64,000 nucleotides of DNA from Klebsormidium nitens (taxonomy: Eukaryota; Plantae; Klebsormidiophyceae). The position numbers and the translations under genes were made by a program. The stretch is taken from contig DF236977.1 in the NCBI GenBank assembly GCA_000708835.1, forward strand, positions 186,001 through 250,000, read 5' to 3'. The notes beneath the pieces were generated by a model. That model had not been told where the DNA came from. It did no database searches and saw only the letters and a list, made by a program, of their open reading frames with translations. Positions 44,987-64,000 of the stretch are shown piece after piece. How positions within the stretch are numbered: position 1 is the first letter of the stretch; each line of letters begins with the position of its first letter.

Positions 44987-45893
44987 GCTTCCACCTATGC
45001 TGTACATTAGTACTTACGTTTCAACGAAGAGGGCCTCTTCCTTGGAGTCCCTGATCTTTTACCCTCCACTCGTAAAACCGTCGTTTTCGCCAACCTTATC
45101 CAACCCAAGCAATCTTCGTAATCAATCATAGCATCTCTGCAAGCGCAACCATAGAAGTCAGGTCTCCGGCAGACTCCGCTGCCAACGCTACTAGAAGTGG
45201 CAGCGCAAGTCTTTTGCCCATGTGGACCTGAAACAGCAGGCCATGGTGAAAGTCGGGGGTGCTTCAATCGGACAATTTCAAAAGTTCGCAATTCGTCGAG
45301 TACCGTAAGTTTGGACGTCTCGGAGTCCTTGTGCGACTCAATCGAACGGTACTCCTTGCGTGTGCCGTTGACCTCCTTGAACCGGATCGTTGGACCGCTC
45401 CTGAGACGAAGACCATGACAACCGTCCGATATCTTTACAAATTGCACGGCCTGGAATCTTACGCGCGCACGCGCGCCTGGCCGTTCGTCTTGCGTGGCCC
45501 GGCCGCCGGTCGGCCCTTTCTTGCGCGCGCAGAGTGAATTCTGCTTTCTGGTAGCCTGAGCCTGAGGTACCCATCTCCACGCAATGTAATTTGCAGGACA
45601 TATCAGGCTCTTATCTTCTGTACCTTCAAGATTCAACCACTGCCCAGTCCTTGATATGTACTGTAGTTGCACTGTGCATTTGACCTCAACTTCTGGAACA
45701 CGAACCTAGAGAGCACAAGAGCAGCTAAGAAATGCAGGCGATAAGCAGCTCGGACAAGGACCCACAGCTAGGCTAACGCTACGTCAGGGCGACCGTCCCA
45801 GTCCAAGCTCAGCTACGACAATCAGGTACCTTATGAATCGAGTGGTCTTCTGAGCCATTGGTGCCGCACTCAAGCGAGCGGGTTCCAAGCTCA
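44987..45893. promoter_or_regulatory. Divergent intergenic region shared by KNL1 and the DZIP1-like gene
   Basis: The starts are about 0.9 kb apart and head-to-head. A GC-rich core with GCGCGC and GGCC/GGCCC runs lies at 45461-45530. Promoter function is inferred. Confidence 0.4.
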
Positions 45894-48800
45894 ATGGGCC
45901 GCTCTACAGGCGGCGTGACGGGCCAGTGGGATGGCGAGGTGCGGCCCCTTGCTTCGCAGCGTCGGAGCCGGGGCACCACAAAATGGGGCACCAGGAACCC
46001 TAAAAGCATGGGGCAGGTGGATTTCTTGAACGGCACGAGCAAGTCGTTTGGTCGGCAGAAGTCGGGCGTGGAGTTTGGCAACAATATGACCAAGATTCTA
46101 GGGCAGGAAGAAGATGGATGGGTGTCCAGCAGCAGCCCGAGCGATGATGAGCTGGCATATGGCACCAGGCCTAGGAACACCATCCCCAGAGCTACCTCCA
46201 TGCCTGCCCAGCCGGGGACCATGGATTTTGACATGGAGAGCAGGCTGATGGCCACTGTGGCTGGGACGACTGCGCCGTTCATGTTTGAGAAGAGGAGGAC
46301 GCGCATTGACTGGAGGAAGCTGCATGGAATCGATGTTGATAGGGTCATCAGGGAGGCAGGTGAGCTAAAGCAATTTTACCATGTCAAAAAGCAAAGGACA
46401 GCTATCAAAGTATGTACGATCTGCTCGCTCAGCTCCTCAAGAGCAGATGAGCTTTTTTTGCACGGCCCAACTTCGAGCTCACCATCGAAACAGCTGGCAT
46501 TGTTCAACTCCAGGCACAGAAACCATGGTGTTTATTCCAAATATGGCCTCCCTTTCTGCTTGCAGATATCGACACTCTCGAGTCTATCCTCGACACCATT
46601 GCATTTGGGGACATTGAGGCAGAAGACACCCGGAACTTCACAGAGTTCAACTTTGTCAAGATCTTCCGGCTCTCTCAGCTCATGGCAAGTTTACATCCGC
46701 TACTTCAAAGCTCCTGCCTTTCCGTAGCTCCTTAAATTGCCAGTGTTTGATCACATACACACATTCATATCACCACTGCTGCACTCCATCAGCAAAGCTC
46801 ATGGTAAGAAACTTGAACACGGTCAAACAGTGGCAGAAAGTTTTGTTGTATGCATTTGTACTTGAGGCACCACTGGGCACCTGGAGCAGTCTCAGGGCCC
46901 ACTTTAATCCATCTCTTTTTTCGGTGCAGGTTGAGTACTTGCTCCATGTCCAGGAGACGCTGGCCTCGCACAAGAGTCAGCTGGTGGTGGCTGGGGCCAC
47001 TGTCCAGAGAAAGACACAGAAGCTGCACAGCACTGTGTCGTGGCACAGAGATGCGCTGGCAGCCACGCGGCGAGATCTGAAGCAGGCCAAGAAGGTAGGG
47101 AGCTTGACTCAAAGGCCAGTTGATGATCTTTTAAGCATTACGGGCAGCAACATGAAATTGCAGGAGAGGTGGATCTTGATAAACAAAGCTGACTTTTTAA
47201 GTGCGATGAGGAAAGCCGTTAAGATTGAAAGCAAGGAACTTGATAGTGGCAACAAGTGCTCATAGACATGAGGGTGGCTGTTACGAGGACGAGGTACTGG
47301 GCATTGAGTGATTATTGAGATTGAAAAAAGTCGAGGTGCTCAGGGAGTGAGGGATATTGGAAGCTTGTCAATGTGTACCAGCTGTGTGAAGAATTGTAGT
47401 CATGAGCAGTGGCAACTTTCTCAATACTTTAGCCTCATAAAAAGCTTATGCACGGAACCGTCTGACTTTGCCCACTGGTTTGCAGACATTGTCCACCTAC
47501 GAGATCCTGCTCCGCCTGCATGGCCATGGGCAGGGCCCCGCCCCCTCCAGCCAGCAGACCCACAAGTGCCCCACCTGCGACAAGCTCTTTGAGTCTGCCT
47601 ACTACCTGGTGAGTTGCGAGCAAGTTGCCAAGGATCGCTGCAAAAGCATTGACAAAATACCTTGTCAGGGCACTTTGATAGCTGTGGGCTGATCCCTGCA
47701 ATATTGTAAGAACGATCGGTGTTGCTTGCACTGCAAAGAAGCCCAATTGATGACAGATTCAAGCCTCCAATGTTGCCGGTATGGAAAGGCTGGGTTTGAA
47801 GTGCCTTTGTTTGGCGCGCAGGACCTGCACATGGCGCGCAGGCATCCCCGCCCGCCAGAGGAAGACCCGAAGGCCATCCTGGCAGCCGCGGTCGCAAAAG
47901 CAGAGGAGATGACCACCATCAAGGTGCGCAGACTTGAGTGTTGTCAGGAAGACCGCTGTGTAGGTCGTGCAAAAGATGTTGCGGGGGCAAGCTTGTGCTG
48001 ATACCAGGTTCGGGAGCCCCCAACTTTGCTGAAGTCTTTGAGAGTCTCCCAAGACGAAAGGACGTCATGGAACGCCGAAAAATGAAGGGTCAGACTTAGC
48101 TAATATCGGATCGGCCTCAATTCGCAGGTCCGGGCCGAGACGACGGCCCAGCTGCAGGCAGAGTTCCAGGAGGTGCTAGCGCGCACGAGAACAGACTTTG
48201 AGAGGGCGGAGCAAGCAGCCAACACCAAGGTGAGGCACGAGGCTCCCCGCAGCTTTCAGCAACTGGTTGGCGGGTCGCACAAAGCGGCAATGAACCAGGG
48301 CCTGCACCTCAGACCGGGCGGGTTGTTTGAGGACTTGGCTACTATCCTGTAAGCTCATTTTTTACGTCAATAGCAGGAACAAATGCAGGGATTGAGAGGC
48401 CTTCTGAATCTTTTTGTTCTTCTAGAGACGTACATCCCGGCAGTCGTACCATCCGGCCTGTGCAGTGCATTAAGCTCCTGGACCCTGCCATCGTCCTTTT
48501 CAAAGGTGTTGGAAAGAATCTTCTGTCCTGCTCGAAACTAGTCTTATAATGTAGAGAACTGATTCCCAGGTCCTGAAACGTTGTCTCTAAACGTTGCCTG
48601 GCTTCTGCCCTTCTAGGTGGTGTCCCTCCAAGCCGTGCTCGCGAGCCGCGAGCGCGAGATGGAGGACCTCCGCGCACGCATCGAGGAGCTGCAGCGCGCG
48701 GCGGCGCGGCGCACGGGCGCGGGCGCGCGCCTCGAAGAGGACGACCCCGAGGCGGCGCACGCGGCCGGCCTGCGCGTCCGCGAGCTGGAAGGGAAGGTGG

Positions 48801-55585: not shown

Positions 55586-58500
55586 TCACAGCTGCTCAAC
55601 TATGCGCGCGGGAACCCCCGCCCACGCCGTCCCCTTGCGCATCTCCACGTTGATCGGGGGATGGCTCAGGGGCCTGACCGTCACACCTTCCTTGAACGTG
55701 CAAGGGAAGATGGCGCAGTCGGGCTCCACGCTGCAGCGGGTCCCGATGGTTATGGGGCCATAGCGGATGCGCTCGAGGTCCCAAACGATATGCGGGCTGA
55801 TGGTGGCCCAGCGGTCCACCACAGAGTCGTCTCCGATGGTCACCCAGTCGTGGTCGTAGATGAAGCACTCGTGCAGGAACGCCCACGTGCTGATGCGGGC
55901 ACCCAGGCAGTTGGCGAACCTGCAGAAACAAGGATGGCAGAATGTCATGCTCTTCAAGAGAGATTAGCAGAGGCGATTGGGCAGAATTTTCCATGAAAAG
56001 CTTGCTTACAAAAGGCGGGCGGTGAAGCCGCCAGGGTCTCGCCCGACTCGTTAGCCCCATGAAGCGCCTTCAACGAGGCCGTCGCTTTCAATGTCATACT
56101 TATTCGAAATTGTACAAAGACAGGCTACAGGCTGTCAATCCCAATCGCACACGGTGCAACAGGGACTGTAGTTGTCTATCAGTCCCGCATGCAAACACTA
56201 ATGCGTGTCGAAGCAGGTGTGAGTAAGATGAGGGGCGCGCAACGTACCAATTGCCAAGGGGGGTGCTCTTGAGCGCTCCTCCCGCCAGGACCGGCACGAA
56301 GATGTTGGTGAAGAGCAGGCTCCGCGCCAGCAACTGCGGGGGACCGAGCACACGAGGTCAGCCACTCCTGCCAAGATATGCGTGCAGGACGGATCTTTTC
56401 TCCAAAACCTGACGACAGGACGCCAACCGCAGTTTGGTTAACCGGACCTGGTTTTCCTCCTGACTCTCTCCGTTCTTACCGAAAAGTGATGACTTCTTCG
56501 GTTGATGCCACCGTGTTTGAGGTTCTTTGCAAGCGTTTTGAGATGGTGGAGCAATGGAAATAGCCCGCTCGAGCGAGGATTGGAGGAATCTTTGGCACTC
56601 ACCGGGTTGCGGAAATCGCTCCTCGCCACAACTGAGTAGTTGCGCTGGTTGCCGAGCAGCAGCCACTTGATGAGGATGGCTACCCCGCAGACAGAGATGA
56701 CTATGCACGCGTGGATGCCGATGGCCAAAGCGACCCACAGCACAGCTTGGACAGCCAGAGGCCCGCCTGCAAATCCAGTTGATCTTGCTTGTTAGAAAAA
56801 CGGGGCGCTTTATGCAATTACCTCTTAAAATGAGGGTCGAAGGATAAAGAAAGAAAGCACTGATAGATTCACAGGAGCCTGTACGGACTTATTGTCTCTA
56901 CCAATACAGAGTCGGATGAGAAGCTCAAATCCAGGATTCGAGGCGGCTTGCAAGTTCAGGGAAACCCGAATCGCCGGCTATCACAGGCAGATCAATGATT
57001 TGAGTCACTTCCGAGCAAGCAAATTCAATTGGGCAGAGAAGTTTTGCCGATACGAGTTTGCCATCCCACGGCCGCGTACCCAGTTTGCGCACAGCATGAA
57101 TGGCCAAGACGACGCCGCCGGCGGCGGCTCCGGTGAGGGCCACGACGAGGAGCCAGAGGGAGGAGTCCAGAAGAACCACAGGCCACAGCGGCACGCCCGC
57201 GATCGCGCGGCTGAAGTCAACTGGCGTGGCGCGCGACAGGGTTTTGGCGTCGGGGCCAAGGACGACCTGAAAAATAGCAGACAAGAAGATCAATTTGGGG
57301 CTGGTACTATGATATCGAATAACAAACTTTTTACAAGTGACCATTCTGATACAAAATGCGGCGGCCTTAGCGAATGGGAAGGTACGGGAGTGCATCTGAG
57401 AAACTGGAGTGTTTTCGCAAATGGTCATTCCCAGGAACCGCTGGGCAGAGGTTTAAGCGTCAGATGCGGAGCGGCGACCTTCCCGCGCTGGCTGGAAGGA
57501 TTTGGGAGCGGCCTCCCACCTGCTGACTGCGCACGTGCGTGTTGTCCCGGACGTACGTGAGGAGCCCCACGGACGCCCCGTCCTCGAGGACGGTCCCCGC
57601 GCCCACGTGCGACTTGGTCCCCACGATGCAGCGCGCGCCGATGGAGATGCGGCACAGCTCCTTCAGGGGGCCGGCCTAATGGCAACATGGAAACTTTTTA
57701 TGATCCACCGGGTCTGAGCCGTGCCGGCTGCAGGAGCTGATGGTTTGCTCTATCAAGTAGTTCCAATATTTTTGAAGTGGTAGAAAGGAACTGGAATATC
57801 CGAGCGGTTGAACGCTTCAAGATAGTAAAGTAAGCAGTGCAACCAGGTACATGAGGGCCACTTGGGTGAGGCTTTGAGAGCAGTCGGACTGTTGAAACTT
57901 CAACACTTGCAGGTCGGGAATACTTTGACATTGAGGATTTGACGGCTTCATTAGAGAGGTGTTCGGGTCTGTAGTAGGACACGGCGAGTGACTAGACTCG
58001 CCCTCAACGAACGGCATCAGTCTCTTCCATCGAAAAGAAATCCTTTGAAACAAATCAATCGGTCGGAACCCATCAAATGGCCTTTCAAAACTCTGCCCGA
58101 CTGACCTGTTGAGAGGCTTGGAAATCCAGAACACACCCCCCGCCGCAGACGCTCCCTTCGCCGACTGTGAGCAGGTCCAGGTCGGCGCATGGGTAGACGC
58201 CGGTGCTGACAGTCGCCCTCCGGCTTAGGCGCGCGCCGTACGCGCGCATCAGCCAGGGCCCGAGGAACGTGACGGTGAGGTGCTGGTACACCAGGGAGCT
58301 GGTGACGAACGTGATGAACGCGTCCACGACGTAGCGCCGCGTGGCGAACCAGCCGCCCGAGTGAACTCGCGGGGCGTCACCTGGGCAGGATGGAGGAACG
58401 ACTCAGTGCTCAGAAAAGAAGTTCCCGAGTAGAAAAATTCATCTCTTCGAGTCGGCTGCTTGAGAATTGCACTTTCGATCCGAAGGAGTCGCTGATATGA

Positions 58501-61500
58501 TGTGCAGGAAAGTTGACGAGCGTTCACTCAGTTCTCCAAGTGCAATTCATGGCATTGAGAGAAACTTTTCATGTGAATCTTTAAGGTGGCTCAGAAAAGG
58601 GTGTTTTCTGACATGCTTGCTTCTGAGACGCGACGAAAGGCTTGATTGCCTGATCCGGACTCCCATTCAGACGCTTGTCGCTGCTCTGACCGTCTTCTCT
58701 GGGGCGACTCACCTTTCCGAGCAGCAGCCACTTGACGACGACACTGGAGCTGATCATCATGGTCACGAAGGCGTAGTAAAGGCCCACCAGGAGCACACCC
58801 CACAGCACGGGGTGCACTGAGTAGGGCCACGTGGCAAAGCTGTGCCAGGTTGCCACAACGTGGACGACTTCGATGCACGGCTGGAGGCACACCACTGCTG
58901 ACGCGATCACGACCGCCACGTATGTCACCCAGCGGCCTGCCGCGACGACGAGGGGGACGTGGTAGCCGGATCCGGCACCAACGGGAATGGATACTGCGCA
59001 CGCATGGGGAGCTGATGTAGGACTATCAATCAGAAAGCTTAGACCCGACATGGAAGACCAGCGTCCTACTTTGGAGGCTTTTGTTTAGATTTGGTTTTGG
59101 ATGCCTCTGGTAACGCGAGGCTGTAACAGAACCCGTATACCAGTAGCGGGTCGCGATACAATCACAATAACGAGCGCTCACGGTCTGAGCACAGCTAAAA
59201 TCATGCTTTGGAGCCGTGCGACCACGCATACTAATTCCTTTGGAGTGGGTACCATTGCTTGCTGAAGAAGGCCTATCCATCAGAAATCACAAGCGAACGA
59301 AACCCGTCGCAGCATGAGAAAGACGTGGCCGGACTTACCGTGAGCCGTCTTGCTGACTTCTTGAAAACGCATCCCCACTTCTTCTGCACAGTCCTTGTCT
59401 GGCTCGGCATCAACAACGGTGCCCGCATCGACGGCAGTAAAGGGTGCCACGTGGACACCCTCGCGCAGCTCGCAGCCGCCTCCCAGGACGGCGTTGGTCC
59501 CAACCGTGCAGCGCGCGCGCACGGTGACTGCCCGCAGGATGAGCGTGCCCGGCTCGAAGGAAGCGGCCCGGATCTTGACCCGGCTGTCGAGACGTGAGCC
59601 GTCGCCCACCGAAACGAGGTCCATCTGCGAAAGAATGCTGCGTTACAGTCCGTTCTCAGGAGGTTACACGAGAAGGTGCACGGATTCATAAGCAGAAGCA
59701 ACATCGTTCCTCAAGACTTGGACGGAGCGGTGTGAATGAACATGCAAGGGAATCTAAAATAGGCAAGTCGAAACAGCAAAAGATTGTTAAGAGACTCTCA
59801 ACACGGACTAATGAAGTCCAGAAAACCGGAGGATTTAAAAAATTCCTCGCTTGAGGATGAAGCTGAAGCAAACACGTGTTTGGAGAAAGCTCTTCAAGGA
59901 GGCTAGGTCAGATAGAGATGGCTGGTCTGCAGAATAAGAGATCAGAGTCCTCCAATCTCCAAAAAAGAAATCTGGCATGGATTTGGTCGTCATTTCCAAA
60001 CACTCCAATGCGCAAAACCTCCCTCAGTGCTTCAAGACGAAGCATTAGCAGGGTGCTGACCTCGGACACTGTTTCCAGGGTGAGCCCCGTGACGCCTTTG
60101 CCGATGCGCGCGCCCCCCAGCCCGACGAGGACCTGCTGCCAGCCGGTCATGTTGAGCGTGAAGATGCGGGCCATGGCGACGGTCGTGTAGACACACCACC
60201 ATCGGATATGGTACCAGCCCCATAGGCTATAGCGGCCCGGTTGGTACCGGCCGATGACGAGCCACTTGAAGAGCACCGCCCACAGGCTAAGGCACAGCAC
60301 GTATGCCAGGTACGCGGCAACCAGCAGCAGGGCGTCCCGCAGAGCGACCGGGGAGAAGCCCCGGGGGGCCCGGTGCAGGTGGGCCGCGAAGGTTTGCTTC
60401 ACGATGAAGCCCGCAGGAATGCCCGGTACGGCCAGACCGAGCACGGGAACGATGCTTGCCTGCAAGGAGTGCACGGGATCGTCCGTCTTCTATTAAGTTT
60501 TCCAGAATTGAAATTCGCGCCTTGGACCTTTCATGTCAATCACCCCCATAGTCTTTAGAGCCTTTGTACACTGCATCCAACATTACAGCACCACTTCTAC
60601 ATGGAAAATGACGGGCGAGCCTTTTTCTGACGACTTTGTCGACACGAGAGATCTTTCCCATTGTGAGGGTATTTATTCCAATCGAGAGCTGCCTCATAGA
60701 CCACCTAGATACATGGCAAGCAGATACGAACAGCACGCCTACTGTTGATTTAAAAACAGGGGTCTCAGGGTCTCCGGCCTCTCAGATGGCAGCACTCTGT
60801 TTTTGTAAGCCGACTCCCAAAACAGAGTTCCATTTAAGCTTTGCCGTCTTGCACCGGCAGCGAAATGCTTCAGACTCAGGATTTGGGAAGCAAGTGCAGA
60901 TGTTCGATTCAAAGCGCAACAGACAAAATGAGAAACGCTCACGAGCAACAGGATGACGGGAAGTCGGATCCACTTCGGAAGTGGCCTGTCGACCCGGTCT
61001 TCCAGTGAGGCCTTGTCACTGGCCTTTGGTGCACCATACGCAAAGGAGTCCGTCTTTCCCTGAACATAGATGGTCTCGCTTCAGTTTCTTCTCCCGACAT
61101 GACAGGAGAATGCAATGAGAAATGTAGTGCATGAGTGCGACCGTTGATAGTCAATATTCCAGATAAGGCTTCTCAATCGAAATGTTATGCACAGACCTGG
61201 GTTTATGACTGCAAAAAGGATCAACTGGCAATTCCCGAGACTGAATTTCGTCAGCTTGAGGCAATAAGACCAAACATGAAGCAAGTTCAAGGCTGCGTTC
61301 AGCACAGAACTTTTCGTTCAGCACAAACAGAAAGGAAGCTAGCCTCACCGGGCTAATGCTGCTTCTCTCGGATGGCGGCTTCCCTGCTTCGATGCGCTCC
61401 AGCAGGATGGCCTCCAGCGGCCGACCGTCGGGCAGCACCTCTCCCTGACCCGCCGCCGATTCCAGGAAGAAGTACGCTTTCGCGGCCTCCAACGATGCGG

Positions 61501-63913
61501 CACGTGCCGCCGCCAGGCGCATCTCCACCGTCGGCAGCATCCGGAGCATCGCCAGCTGGCCCTGCCGGAAGTCGACGGACGGCGGGACGGAGTCCGCTGT
61601 TCCGTCCGCTGCATCCGCGGGTCCGATCTGCCCGGCCGAGCGCACCAAGGCGCGGCCACCTCTCGCGGCCGCGTGTCCCTCCTCCTGCGCTGCGTTTGGT
61701 GGTGCGGACTTGGGGGCGCCCGTGAGGGCGACCATCACTGCGTCGGCCAGCGTCTCCGGGGTCGCCCCACCGTCCGCCAGGCCCGCCGTCTCGAAGTCCA
61801 GCTCGATGCCAAATTGTTCGTTGACCGCCTGCAGCGCTTCCGCGGCTTTCAGGGAGTCGAAGCCCAGCTCCACCAGCGGGCTGTGCCAGGCGGCGTCTCC
61901 GTCGACTATTCCCACCAGCCCCGCAATGGCCTCCCGAACTTCGCGGCGCCCACGTGATCCAAAGGATTTGGTTGCTGGATCCGTTCCAGCCGCAACGGTG
62001 TTAACGAGCGCATCCTGGGGCTCGAAATGGCCGGCGCTTTTCAGGCCGGTCCATCCAGGCGTCTGGTCGCCGGCGGTCGCTCTCAGCACTTCCACCGCGA
62101 GGGCGTCCAGCGTGAGGAATCCCTGGTCGAATCCCAGGTCTCCAAGGTCCAACCGCGGCCCCAGATCCGTCTCGATCCTCCCCACCAGCTCCGCTACCGC
62201 CAGCGAGTCCATTCCGGCTTCCGCCAGCGGGCTGCTCCCGTCGAATGGAACGCCGGACTCTTCCAAAGGGGTCATTCGGTACAGCTGGCGGGAGATATTC
62301 TGGAGGCGTTCCGCGGCTCCGGGCGACGGAAGATTTGCACCCACTGCGCTTGCCGCGGTCTTGACCGAGGATCCCTCCCGGGTGGTGGTGGTGAGCTCAA
62401 TGCCTTGCGGACCTTCTGCAGCGTTCCCTTGGACTGGTTCCGGCGCGGTCGTACATTTTGCCTGTACAAAACGCACATCTGTTGGTCAAAAGCGTTGTGA
62501 TCCTGAAAGCTCATACACGTTATCCTCTCGAACCAAAACTTGGATCCATCAGCGGCTTTATGGGTTTCAGCGTTTGCTGGCTCAGAAGTTAAGTAGCCGC
62601 AACAGGTCCTGACTTTTGGCCAGTGAGAAGAACAAGAGAGAAAGTTGGTGGATAGGAATGAAAACTGTCGATCGCGGACGGACTTACAGATGAAAATTCT
62701 GTTCCAAGATCAGTTGTTCGCAGCTTGAGCTGAATGAAACTCGAAGTCTTCCAGTAAAGGCTGGTATCCTATAACATGTCAATCCCAGCCGTTCCTCGAG
62801 CACACGGATCTTGAAACAGCGAGGGTGTGACAACAGTTTTTTCAAGTCGCGTGCCACGAATCGACCGTCCCAGGGAACTGCTTTTCCCCCACATGATTTT
62901 GAATCTGCATTTATTTCTAGCAGCACTTGAGGTTTGTTCCTCTGTTTCCAAAGCTTCGCTTTCGCAGAAGACTAAAGCCCGGATCTCACCTTGGCCAGCG
63001 TGTCTAGCTCGCCCGACGCCCATCGCTGCAGCATGTCGTTTCGGCGGACCTTTCCGCTGGTGGTCTTGGAGAGGGTCTTGGGCGGAAGGATGTATACCCC
63101 GGCCACGGCCACTCCGGCCGTTCCGGCCACGGCGGCGCGGATCCGCCCGGGCAGCTCCGCGGGGCACCGCGCGGGGTCACGCGCCTCCGCAATCAGCAGC
63201 ACGCCCTCGGGCTGGCCCGGCTCACTGGGCGCCTGGGACAGAACGGACAAGGATTGAAGAAGTATCGACTCAATGAAAGGACTGGTCTTAGAGAAGATAG
63301 AAGGGGCCGTTCTGCCTGAGTGCGCCATACGCCAGAAGCTTTCCTGGTAGCTTTACCAGGAAAGGTTAAAAGGAGGATTGAATTCAAGTCATCAGCAAAT
63401 TCAAGTCATCAGCAGATCCTTCTGTGGCAGAAGCTAATGATCTTGTGATTTGCTTGTCAAATCAAAGCTCTGTGACTTCCTGCAAACTCCGAAGTCTTAT
63501 GTGGATGTCAAACCATCCTCGCAAATTTGAAGCGACCATCAAGACATGAAGATGCAAAACTTGACGACATCAAAGCTGTTGAAGAATACCTTTCATTCAG
63601 TAGATCGAGCTTTCAGGTAGAAAGAAGGAAGTCGGAGTTGTTTATTAGGCGCCAACGTGCAAAAACAGGTGTGCAGACTGTGCGACAAAAAGTTTTGCAG
63701 CGCAATCTCATTGTTGTAGACCTCGACCAAGTTCTGCCATTCGGCATCTCACCTGGACCGCAACGATGCCCCCCGGGCGGAGGAAAGTTTCTTCGGCGTC
63801 TTGGACGGCGCGCTCAATGTCTTGTGGGTACACGTTATGTCCTCGCACCACGAGCATGTCCTTGAGGCGTCCCGTCACGAACAATTGGCCTTCCACGATC
63901 TTGCCCAGGTCAC
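55586..63913 (-). CDS. NRPS-like membrane enzyme: FAAL-type adenylation domain (C-terminal part), two ACP/T domains, and three TM + left-handed beta-helix modules (Pls/PosA terminal-domain-like); 5' part outside window
   Basis: Twelve exons: 63913-63753, 63232-62990, 62461-61349, 61059-60943, 60459-60061, 59624-59339, 59011-58691, 58380-58106, 57675-57520, 57266-57080, 56766-56603, 56333-56248, 55919-55586; in phase, with one donor ambiguity. Motifs: GDLG...GRLKDMLVVRGHNVYPQDIE, PKTLSKTTSGKVRR, GMDSL and GFDSL, KWLVIGRYQPGRYSLWGWYHIRWW, GGARIGKGV, KWLLLGK, KWLLLGN, TPLGNWFANCLGARI, hexapeptide-like VTIGDDSVV/ITIGTRCSV, and the end WAGVPAR. Confidence 0.9.
63381..63414. repeat. Perfect 17-bp tandem duplication in an intron
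   Basis: AATTCAAGTCATCAGCA x2. Confidence 0.9.
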
Positions 63914-64000
63914 CTATGCAAAGAAGAAAGCAAGTTAATGTGGCCCTTTAGGATCCCTCAAACGAGCGCTGTAGACACAAGTCACGAGTCTCCGCCGAAT

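Follow-up and report, generated by a model that had tools for sequence, protein, structure and literature searches.

A Pls-type machine normally couples an acyl group that sits on a carrier to a free amine and then exports what it has made, and to our knowledge its terminal domain is known only for the synthesis of cationic poly-amino acids. Beta-helix acyltransferases of the LpxA/LpxD type are trimers with active sites at the subunit interfaces and a catalytic His, and LpxA and LpxD use an acyl-ACP donor and form ester or amide bonds. In Pls (Streptomyces albulus, epsilon-poly-L-lysine) and PosA (Acinetobacter baumannii, delta-poly-L-ornithine), a carrier is followed by three copies of a module consisting of a helix pair and a beta-helix, and in the published AlphaFold model of PosA the three beta-helices show three-fold symmetry and are packed on six helices (PMC10522769). 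FAALs pass the acyl group to holo-ACP and refuse CoA (PMC8460268), and in FAAL-ACP loading units (FadD32/Pks13 type and PRK05691-type N-terminus) a FAAL is followed by carriers (PMC8460268, PMC11837247). From plants, fusions of FAAL-like proteins with HemY and catalase or amino-acid-oxidase domains have been reported (Patil et al. 2021, PMC8460268). A search for literature joining FAALs with Pls-type synthetases found none.

The gene described here lies in the window, the 64,000-nucleotide stretch of Klebsormidium nitens DNA that was analyzed. Its spliced model (13 exons and 12 complete introns, positions 63913 to 55586, minus strand) gives an open frame of 1298 codons with no stop, and the protein ends in ...WAGVPARIVEQL, followed by the stop codon at 55588-55586 (Table 1). 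The 12 complete introns are all GT..AG and 253 to 528 nt long. A further intron begins at 63914-64000, and the gene runs on in the 5′ direction past the end of the window (base 64000). The G+C content is 66.0% in exons and 47.7% in introns, an 18-point contrast. The E/F junction (TVSE followed by MDLVSVGD) agrees with the family profile, membrane helix 1 spans the D/E junction, and the G/H junction is placed with a 4-residue uncertainty. Neighboring genes within the window are unrelated and provide no gene-cluster context.

A preliminary description made from the sequence had reported, for this locus, the C-terminus of an adenylation domain, two phosphopantetheine sites, three repeats of a membrane hairpin, KWL(L/V)xG, GARI, and a beta-helix ending in WAGVPAR, at least twelve spliceosomal introns, and no condensation, KS, or TE domain. 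Profile, motif, and splice-model analysis recovered all of the listed elements on the minus strand at the positions given for them. The adenylation C-terminus is the FAAL C-terminal subdomain at 63913-62990, the phosphopantetheine sites are Ser220 and Ser337 in exon C, module 2 has GARL, and the 12 complete introns are accompanied by the start of another. No condensation, KS, or TE match was found in the 10 stop-free stretches scanned with NCBIfam and Pfam profiles.

Table 1. Exons and carrier domains of the gene, listed in the direction of transcription
Feature	Position	Strand	Content
Exon A	63913-63753	minus	With exon B: C-terminal subdomain of FAAL
Exon B	63232-62990	minus	With exon A: C-terminal subdomain of FAAL
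Exon C	62461-61349	minus	Two PP-binding carrier domains and low-complexity linkers
Carrier 1	~62296-62078	minus	GMDSL motif, Ser220 at 62206-62204
Carrier 2	~61951-61730	minus	GFDSL motif, Ser337 at 61855-61853
Exon D	61059-60943	minus	With exon E: membrane helices 1 and 2
Exon E	60459-60061	minus	With exon D: helices 1 and 2; KWLVIG 60267-60250; GARIG 60114-60100
Exon F	59624-59339	minus	Beta-helix module 1
Exon G	59068-58691	minus	With H and I: helices 3 and 4, KWLLLG, GARL, beta-helix module 2
Exon H	58380-58106	minus	Part of G-I unit (helices 3/4, beta-helix module 2)
Exon I	57675-57520	minus	Part of G-I unit (helices 3/4, beta-helix module 2)
Exon J	57266-57080	minus	With K, L, and M: helices 5 and 6, KWLLLG, GARI, module 3
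Exon K	56766-56603	minus	Part of J-M unit (helices 5/6, beta-helix module 3)
Exon L	56333-56248	minus	Part of J-M unit (helices 5/6, beta-helix module 3)
Exon M	55919-55586	minus	End of J-M unit: Asp1212, Asp1218, His1231 (55792-55790), WAGVPAR, stop

The window covers the C-terminal subdomain of the FAAL; the N-terminal two thirds, with the FAAL-specific insertion and the substrate pocket, lie beyond base 64000. The best NCBIfam matches of exons A and B were FAAL families (FadD32-like, 58.7 bits; PRK12476, 51 bits; PRK05850, 49 bits). In the upstream exon of a relative from a related alga (contig L001), FAAL model PRK05850 scored 146 bits, compared to 51 bits for the amino-acid adenylation model TIGR01733 and at most 45 bits for acyl-CoA ligase models, and the Aas-type model NF006386 was a weak match. 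These scores place the domain nearer to FAAL models than to those for acyl-CoA ligases or amino-acid adenylation and support its assignment as FAAL-like rather than amino-acid-type. Pfam PF00550 matched two stretches of exon C (66.4 bits). The two PP-binding domains with their DSL serines, directly downstream of the FAAL and in the same frame, are the putative holo-ACP acceptor. CoA-independent loading is implied, because carrier domains directly follow a FAAL-type adenylation domain.

The remainder of the protein consists of the three repeats, each with two hydrophobic helices, KWL(V/L)xG, GAR(I/L), and a hexapeptide left-handed beta-helix. Hydropathy peaks at residues 540-558, 589-607, 810-841, 860-890, 1072-1098, and 1119-1137 correspond to six helices in three pairs, with peak values of 2.5 and 2.35 for helices 1 and 2 in exons D/E. 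Pfam Hexapep matched exons F (31.4 bits), I, and M, and TIGR02353 matched exons E, F, and M at 46.5, 28.8, and 35.1 bits when exons were queried singly, against a curated cut-off of 423.1 bits. The spliced C-terminal 713 residues gave one hit of 300 bits that covers positions 58-716 of our own 718-position family profile; since they align in one piece at this score, the match is far beyond chance. Typical members score ~900 bits on this profile (median, 902), and fungal members, at 309 to 315, are at about the level of the algal protein. A sub-threshold TIGR02353 score is likely, given the 165 bits that the homologue P0099 reaches on TIGR02353. A blastp comparison of the terminal domain with the family was end-to-end (E, 1e-47). 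Of the 58 columns most conserved in the family, 36 are retained; these include the three KW..G motifs, DL..IGD, His1231, and W.G.P, the last of which is lacking in module 1. The His at position 1231 is shared by 98% of relatives, in module 3 only. On the profile alignments, the terminal domain appears to be complete but divergent and of the Pls/PosA type, the type that the preliminary description had proposed.

Structural comparison placed module 3 among beta-helix acyltransferases. The AlphaFold2 model of exon M is a left-handed parallel beta-helix (pLDDT, 97.3), for which Foldseek returned maltose/galactoside O-acetyltransferases, serine acetyltransferase, and the N-acyltransferase AntD with a probability of 1.00 and TM scores up to 0.85, at sequence identities of only ~15 to 20%. 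The predicted fold is thereby common to module 3, LpxA/LpxD, and other beta-helix acyltransferases, and modules 1 and 2 matched LpxD/LpxA weakly in sequence. In contrast to LpxA/LpxD, the algal modules occur three times in one chain, with a six-helix anchor and a covalently attached carrier. A PDB sequence search found distant beta-helix proteins only and no solved structure of a terminal domain.

Comparison with the described systems shows what is shared and what differs. The order of carrier and three membrane/soluble modules is that of Pls and PosA (PMC10522769), as profiles, blastp, and our own family profile agree; KW..G, GARIG, DL..IGD, and W.G.P are common to all, and condensation and thioesterase domains are absent from all. 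However, Pls and PosA have an amino-acid-type (TIGR01733) adenylation domain before the carrier, which the algal protein lacks, having a FAAL-type domain instead; they have one carrier, whereas the algal protein has two; and they are bacterial, whereas the algal gene is eukaryotic with at least 12 introns. FAAL-ACP loading units share the FAAL followed by carriers, but the algal protein has no KS or condensation acceptor, the Pls-like membrane domain being the one catalytic part that follows the carriers. Aas-type acyl-ACP synthetase/lysophospholipid acyltransferases and bacterial FAAL-LPLAT proteins follow the same logic of fusing an adenylating enzyme to a membrane acyltransferase so that lipids are acylated independently of CoA (PMC8460268, PMC12820801), but their acyltransferase is of another fold family, the PlsC/LPLAT type. 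Plant FAAL-like multidomain proteins without assigned function, to which the preliminary description referred, are indeed in the literature, and they likewise place FAAL-like domains of Viridiplantae in an unconventional multidomain context; a Pls-like membrane domain is not mentioned in the account of these fusions by Patil et al. 2021 (PMC8460268).

A search with exon C found only one sequence, ORF P0154 of the relative, on L001. All nine splice sites of exons A to E are kept in this relative, as are 92 to 99% of the residues of exons A and B. The dN/dS ratio was 0.08 in the FAAL, 0.14 in hairpin 1, and 0.20 in the carrier cores, against 0.75 in the exon C linkers, which shows purifying selection on the domains. 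In a set of 66 full-length proteins related to the terminal domain, 55 matched TIGR01733 at E ≤ 1e-50, and none had a FAAL head (family match at the same threshold). We found only one further FAAL-type fusion, on a contig from a metagenome, and that contig likewise looks eukaryotic. In the tree, the algal terminal domain has a long branch and falls in neither the core bacterial clade nor the fungal one, and no representative protein exceeded 51% identity to exon E. When metagenomes were scanned with the FAAL exon of the relative, FAAL matches alone came back (33 to 45% identity), none with a Pls-like domain downstream, and an ESM Atlas search returned generic AMP-binding clusters only.

The nearest source-named relatives of exon E are bacterial (Planctomycetota/Verrucomicrobiota group), as might be expected of a bacterial contaminant or an assembly artefact. 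This origin, or a dead gene, is extremely improbable given the 12 canonical spliceosomal introns and their 18-point G+C contrast to exons, a spliced RNA contig, intron positions common to a second alga, dN/dS well below 1, and a frame intact over 13 exons. The gene is eukaryotic and functional, and its description as a resident nuclear gene holds. The locus might instead comprise two genes, one for the FAAL and its carriers and, downstream, one for a Pls-like membrane protein. RNA coverage is thin (depth, 2 to 4) and most contigs are unspliced, including those over the C/D and D/E borders (61249-61450 and 60397-60639), so that RNA confirms the K/L and L/M junctions only, through one contig of minus sense (56684-56603, 56333-56246, 55917-55711); another contig stops precisely at the exon I donor (57520). 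However, the end of exon C and the start of exon D are in the same phase with canonical sites kept in L001, neither a stop codon nor a start signal is needed between them, and helix 1 is built over the D/E junction. Moreover, P0099 has a FAAL C-terminus, a carrier, and a Pls-like domain within one uninterrupted ORF, and an adenylating domain is fused in front in all 66 full-length relatives, which makes two genes very unlikely. Co-transcription is thereby established by spliced RNA for the last three exons, and for the rest it is supported by intron phase, the exon order of the relative, and P0099. Contamination, a pseudogene, and two genes were rejected on the introns, spliced RNA, conservation in L001, intact frame, and single-ORF homologue. 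An RNA joint at 59593/60079 was rejected as the E/F splice; it is out of frame, with GT..AG on the plus strand.

The protein could also be a true Pls/PosA, an ordinary synthetase of cationic poly-amino acids, with an adenylation domain that merely resembles a FAAL, and Pls-type homologues are known from fungi and some protists (PMC10522769, PMC7179176). We consider this highly improbable in view of the 146 versus 51 bits of the relative's exon, the FAAL families topping exons A and B, and the grouping of the algal lineage apart from relatives that mostly match TIGR01733. A less remote alternative, although still rather unlikely, is an iterative Pls-like polymerase in which the FAAL loads a fatty acid bearing its own nucleophile (hydroxy, amino, or oxylipin-derived), the terminal domain joins such units one after another into a lengthening polyester or polyamide, and this chain is exported through the six helices as a primitive surface polymer of cutin- or estolide-like kind. 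The full Pls architecture is held under purifying selection, two tandem carriers would fit high-throughput iterative use, and HemY/catalase fusions occur among plant FAAL-like proteins (PMC8460268). Against this, FTIR of the Klebsormidium wall revealed few ester bonds and no cutin-type polymer (PMC4927632), and the Pls-type channel is known for cationic hydrophilic polymers only.

We judge it somewhat probable that one streptophyte-alga nuclear gene encodes a self-loading membrane acyltransferase, in which acyl transfer from carrier to acceptor would depend on His1231. The FAAL-type domain would adenylate a fatty acid or modified fatty acid, and the acyl group would be loaded onto one of the two tandem carriers and not onto CoA. 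The carrier would deliver the thioester to the Pls/PosA-type terminal domain, whose three tandem beta-helix modules may pack as a pseudo-trimer on a six-helix membrane bundle. The conserved His of module 3, together with Asp residues close to it, would activate an acceptor amine or hydroxyl for attack on the thioester, and the lipid product would be let go into or across the membrane. We infer the donor, acceptor, catalytic residues, topology, and whether transfer is single or repeated. An unsubstituted fatty acid has no nucleophile, so the polymerizing chemistry of Pls is not simply transferable to it. We lean toward one or a few transfers onto an acceptor amine or hydroxyl over the making of long polymers, and the architecture suggests a membrane lipid conjugate or a lipid polymer as the product. 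A point against the self-loading acyltransferase is that a single transfer leaves the retention of the six-helix, export-like architecture unexplained.

In the hydrophobic layer of Klebsormidium, wall-bound fatty acids are apparently attached through amide bonds and not through ester bonds (Kondo et al. 2016, PMC4927632). It is a speculative and, in our estimate, doubtful proposition that this enzyme is the missing activity behind the layer, fed by fatty acids and supplying the cell surface with N-acylated amines, N-acylated peptides, or a lipid polymer. If true, this would mean a water-proofing route older than, and distinct from, land-plant cutin. The lipid reading would extend the Pls-type membrane bond-forming machine to lipid chemistry, offers a possible function for the unexplained plant FAAL-like multidomain proteins, and makes this gene a candidate for how the attachment of fatty acids to the wall of Klebsormidium may proceed independently of the cutin pathway.

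Frame-by-frame translation of the minus strand from 64000 to 55400 showed a chain of open stretches whose products are, in order, the C-terminal part of a fatty acyl-AMP ligase (FAAL), phosphopantetheine carriers, and a terminal domain of the type found in epsilon-poly-L-lysine synthetase (Pls) and delta-poly-L-ornithine synthetase (PosA). Exons were joined manually, guided by canonical splice sites, by reading phase, and by how well the product agreed with homologues. All 12 complete introns of the resulting 13-exon model are GT..AG and 253 to 528 nt long, which bears out the preliminary description's claim of at least twelve introns. The exons are 66.0% G+C, compared to 47.7% for the introns, and the spliced frame is stop-free over 1298 residues, ending in ...WAGVPARIVEQL. 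Because an acceptor site marks the start of exon A, the gene must extend 5′ past window base 64000. Exon G begins at a tandem acceptor (CCAAAG/TAG/, window 59069-59066), where both choices are in frame and differ by one Val, and the G/H junction carries a four-residue uncertainty that falls within a loop. The nearest recognisable neighbour, two adjoining ORFs on the plus strand at 45858-47265 with a Dzip1/Iguana-like ciliary N-terminal domain (Pfam PF13815), has no relation to lipid metabolism.

Exons of the FAAL-carrier-Pls-like gene and matches to the NCBIfam terminal-domain model
Feature	Position in window	Strand	Basis or score
Exon A	63913-63753	-	hand-joined gene model
Exon B	63232-62990	-	hand-joined gene model
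Exon C	62461-61349	-	hand-joined gene model
Exon D	61059-60943	-	hand-joined gene model
Exon E	60459-60061	-	hand-joined gene model
Exon F	59624-59339	-	hand-joined gene model
Exon G	59068-58691	-	hand-joined gene model
Exon H	58380-58106	-	hand-joined gene model
Exon I	57675-57520	-	hand-joined gene model
Exon J	57266-57080	-	hand-joined gene model
Exon K	56766-56603	-	hand-joined gene model
Exon L	56333-56248	-	hand-joined gene model
Exon M	55919-55586	-	hand-joined gene model
TIGR02353 match	60489-59911	-	46.5 bits
TIGR02353 match	59642-59283	-	28.8 bits
TIGR02353 match	55963-55589	-	35.1 bits

The sole database protein closely similar to exon C (P0154, 71% identity) is located on a 4.8-kb Logan contig of a relative (L001, run SRR23617307), which aligns collinearly to window positions 63976 to 60202 with a nucleotide identity of 77-91%. 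Exons A to E keep all nine of their splice sites at the same positions in L001. Protein identity is 92-99% for exons A, B, D, and E and 74% for exon C; intron identity is 37-65%. At a dS of ∼0.3, dN/dS was lowest in the FAAL part (0.08), followed by the first membrane hairpin (0.14) and the two carrier cores (0.20), and reached 0.75 in the linkers. The pattern is that of a working gene, with constraint on both carriers.

Parts of the gene stretch were also present in four public runs, whose RNA label is a guess. A contig of run X1 is spliced (56684-56603, 56333-56246, and 55917-55711), and its gaps read CT..AC on the plus strand, which corresponds to GT..AG introns in an mRNA of the minus strand. 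Introns K/L and L/M are thereby confirmed, and the X1 run is shown to contain RNA. The end of a second RNA contig coincides with the donor site of exon I (57520). RNA depth on the gene is 2-4 and the remaining contigs are unspliced across exon borders; expression therefore looks weak, and the RNA is no proof of co-transcription of the whole gene. The unspliced contigs (window 60397-60639, 61249-61450, 58335-58698, and 57520-57773) suggest much pre-mRNA or DNA carry-over in the libraries, or slow splicing of the gene. Separately, an RNA contig of run X4 (window 59571-60245) joins 59593 to 60079 across a gap with well-formed plus-strand GT..AG sites (GAGACG/GTGAGC ... TGTTTCCAG/GG), a joint that does not keep the frame of the minus-strand gene. 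The contig may come from a spliced antisense transcript over exons E and F; it was seen in one run at a depth of 2.3 with just 23 nt on one side.

The FAAL portion inside the window is the C-terminal subdomain alone. In NCBIfam, the families that best fit the stretch 63947-63711 were the FAAL start of PRK05691 (59 bits), FadD32-like (58.7 bits), and FadD32 (53.2 bits), along with the FAAL subfamilies PRK12476 (51.1 bits) and PRK05850 (49.0 bits), and the stretch 63352-62975 carries the same families on to their last residues. The next upstream exon, read in the relative (L001:2-649), scored 146 bits with FAAL PRK05850 and 129 bits with FadD21; the amino-acid adenylation model TIGR01733 gave 51 bits and acyl-CoA ligase models gave 45 bits at most. 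By these model scores the activating domain is FAAL-type, the upstream exon being that of the relative and not of the window gene. Downstream of it, the open stretch 62485-61154 (444 residues) encodes two PP-binding domains (Pfam, 66.4 bits), in agreement with the two phosphopantetheine sites noticed earlier.

Three stretches of the terminal region gave matches of 28.8 to 46.5 bits to TIGR02353, the model by which NCBI names Pls/PosA synthetases, and a Pfam scan found the Hexapep repeat in three places. Six hydrophobic helices, arranged as three pairs, lie within residues 506-1298, with KWL(V/L)xG directly after the second helix of every pair and GAR(I/L) ∼50 residues on. An exhaustive search with exon E returned 502 relatives, of which the top one scored only 85 bits, with 35% identity across the aligned part. 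The spliced domain aligned with the terminal domains of relatives over residues 79-787 of 793 (blastp E 1e-47, 24% identity) and gave a single match of 300 bits over positions 58-716 of a 718-position family profile, which was built in this analysis from 42 typical members. On the same profile, seed members scored 444-980 bits (median, 902) and fungal members 309-315 bits. The terminal region aligns from end to end with those of the family despite the low scores of the exon E search; the preliminary description had likewise noted a layout of the Pls/PosA type.

The algal protein retains 36 of the 58 family columns of at least 80% conservation, among them DL..IGD, the KW..G of each of the three repeats, and the R..W that follows the first. 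Module 3, the last of the three soluble beta-helix parts, keeps Asp1212, Asp1218, His1231, and W.G.P, and His1231 is 98% conserved in the family. No equivalent of this His was found in modules 1 and 2 by family column comparison, and W.G.P is absent from module 1 in the family profile alignment. The predicted fold of exon M is a confident left-handed beta-helix (pLDDT 97.3, from an alignment of 66 homologous segments), and its top structural matches were hexapeptide O- and N-acyltransferases and gamma-carbonic anhydrases; a search of the PDB copy found no solved Pls-type terminal domain. As published, the AlphaFold model of PosA places three beta-helices on six bent membrane helices, packed with three-fold symmetry (PMC10522769).

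A tree built from 99 terminal domains, in which its placement is unsure, gives the algal protein a long branch and groups it, without resolution, with P0099, P0031, and P0055. This group lies outside the core bacterial clade and is distinct from the clade of the fungal proteins. Of the 66 relatives whose N-terminal part was complete, 55 have heads that matched TIGR01733 at E ≤ 1e-50, 7 matched a FadD7-like acyl-CoA ligase model, and none matched a FAAL model at that level. The sole other FAAL-type fusion found was P0099 (PRK12476, 114 bits; TIGR02353, 165 bits; one carrier), in which the FAAL C-terminus, carrier, and Pls-like domain lie within one unbroken ORF. Its locus (L002:7601-13278, a 65% G+C metagenome contig, ENA ERZ25067524) has a eukaryote-style acceptor site at ∼9230, between the FAAL N-terminal ORF and the remainder, and is probably from a eukaryote; no catalase or FAD domain was found upstream of P0099 on this contig. 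The FadD7-like heads mean that non-amino-acid heads on a Pls-like membrane domain are not confined to the alga. One of them, P0069, was confirmed individually; it belongs to a separate clade of terminal domains (P0040, P0048, P0063, P0069, P0087, P0103, P0115, and P0147) that includes Trametes and Ophiocordyceps proteins. Elsewhere in the family, P0003 and its relatives P0164-P0169 (Planctomycetota-type Pls/PosA) carry a C-terminal fused 4′-phosphopantetheinyl transferase domain, a self-priming arrangement.

No link between FAALs and Pls-type synthetases or TIGR02353 turned up in the searchable literature. Homologues of the PosA type are on published record for fungi, Amoebozoa, Metazoa, and Alveolata but for no green plant or alga, and solely as poly-amino-acid synthetases (PMC10522769). 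A 2026 survey gives "FAAL-NRPS" arrangements in Chlorophyta with no detail (PMC12820801). Every part was known already; the combination and its host are not described in the literature searched.

The beta-helix acyltransferases LpxA and LpxD take the acyl group from acyl-ACP and have a catalytic His at the subunit interface. FAALs load fatty acids onto holo-ACP and reject CoA (PMC8460268), and the Pls/PosA terminal domain links the acyl group held by the carrier to a free amine, with the product freed outside the cell (PMC10522769). Taken together, these precedents make a self-loading, CoA-independent membrane acyltransferase the most economical reading of the enzyme. A fatty acid would be adenylated and carried as a thioester on either of the two carriers; an amine or hydroxyl of the acceptor, activated by His1231, would then attack the thioester, and the product would be let go into or through the membrane. 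A donor with its own nucleophile, a matter of the substrate and of the gene's 5′ part, would permit polymer growth.

Fusions of FAAL-like proteins to HemY and catalase domains have been recorded in plants as unexplained (PMC8460268). In Klebsormidium, Kondo et al. found wall fatty acids with few ester bonds and proposed that they are amide-linked to wall proteins (PMC4927632). Given that proposal, a Pls-type enzyme that is fed with fatty acids and forms amides would be an attractive, if unproven, candidate for the putative amide linkage.
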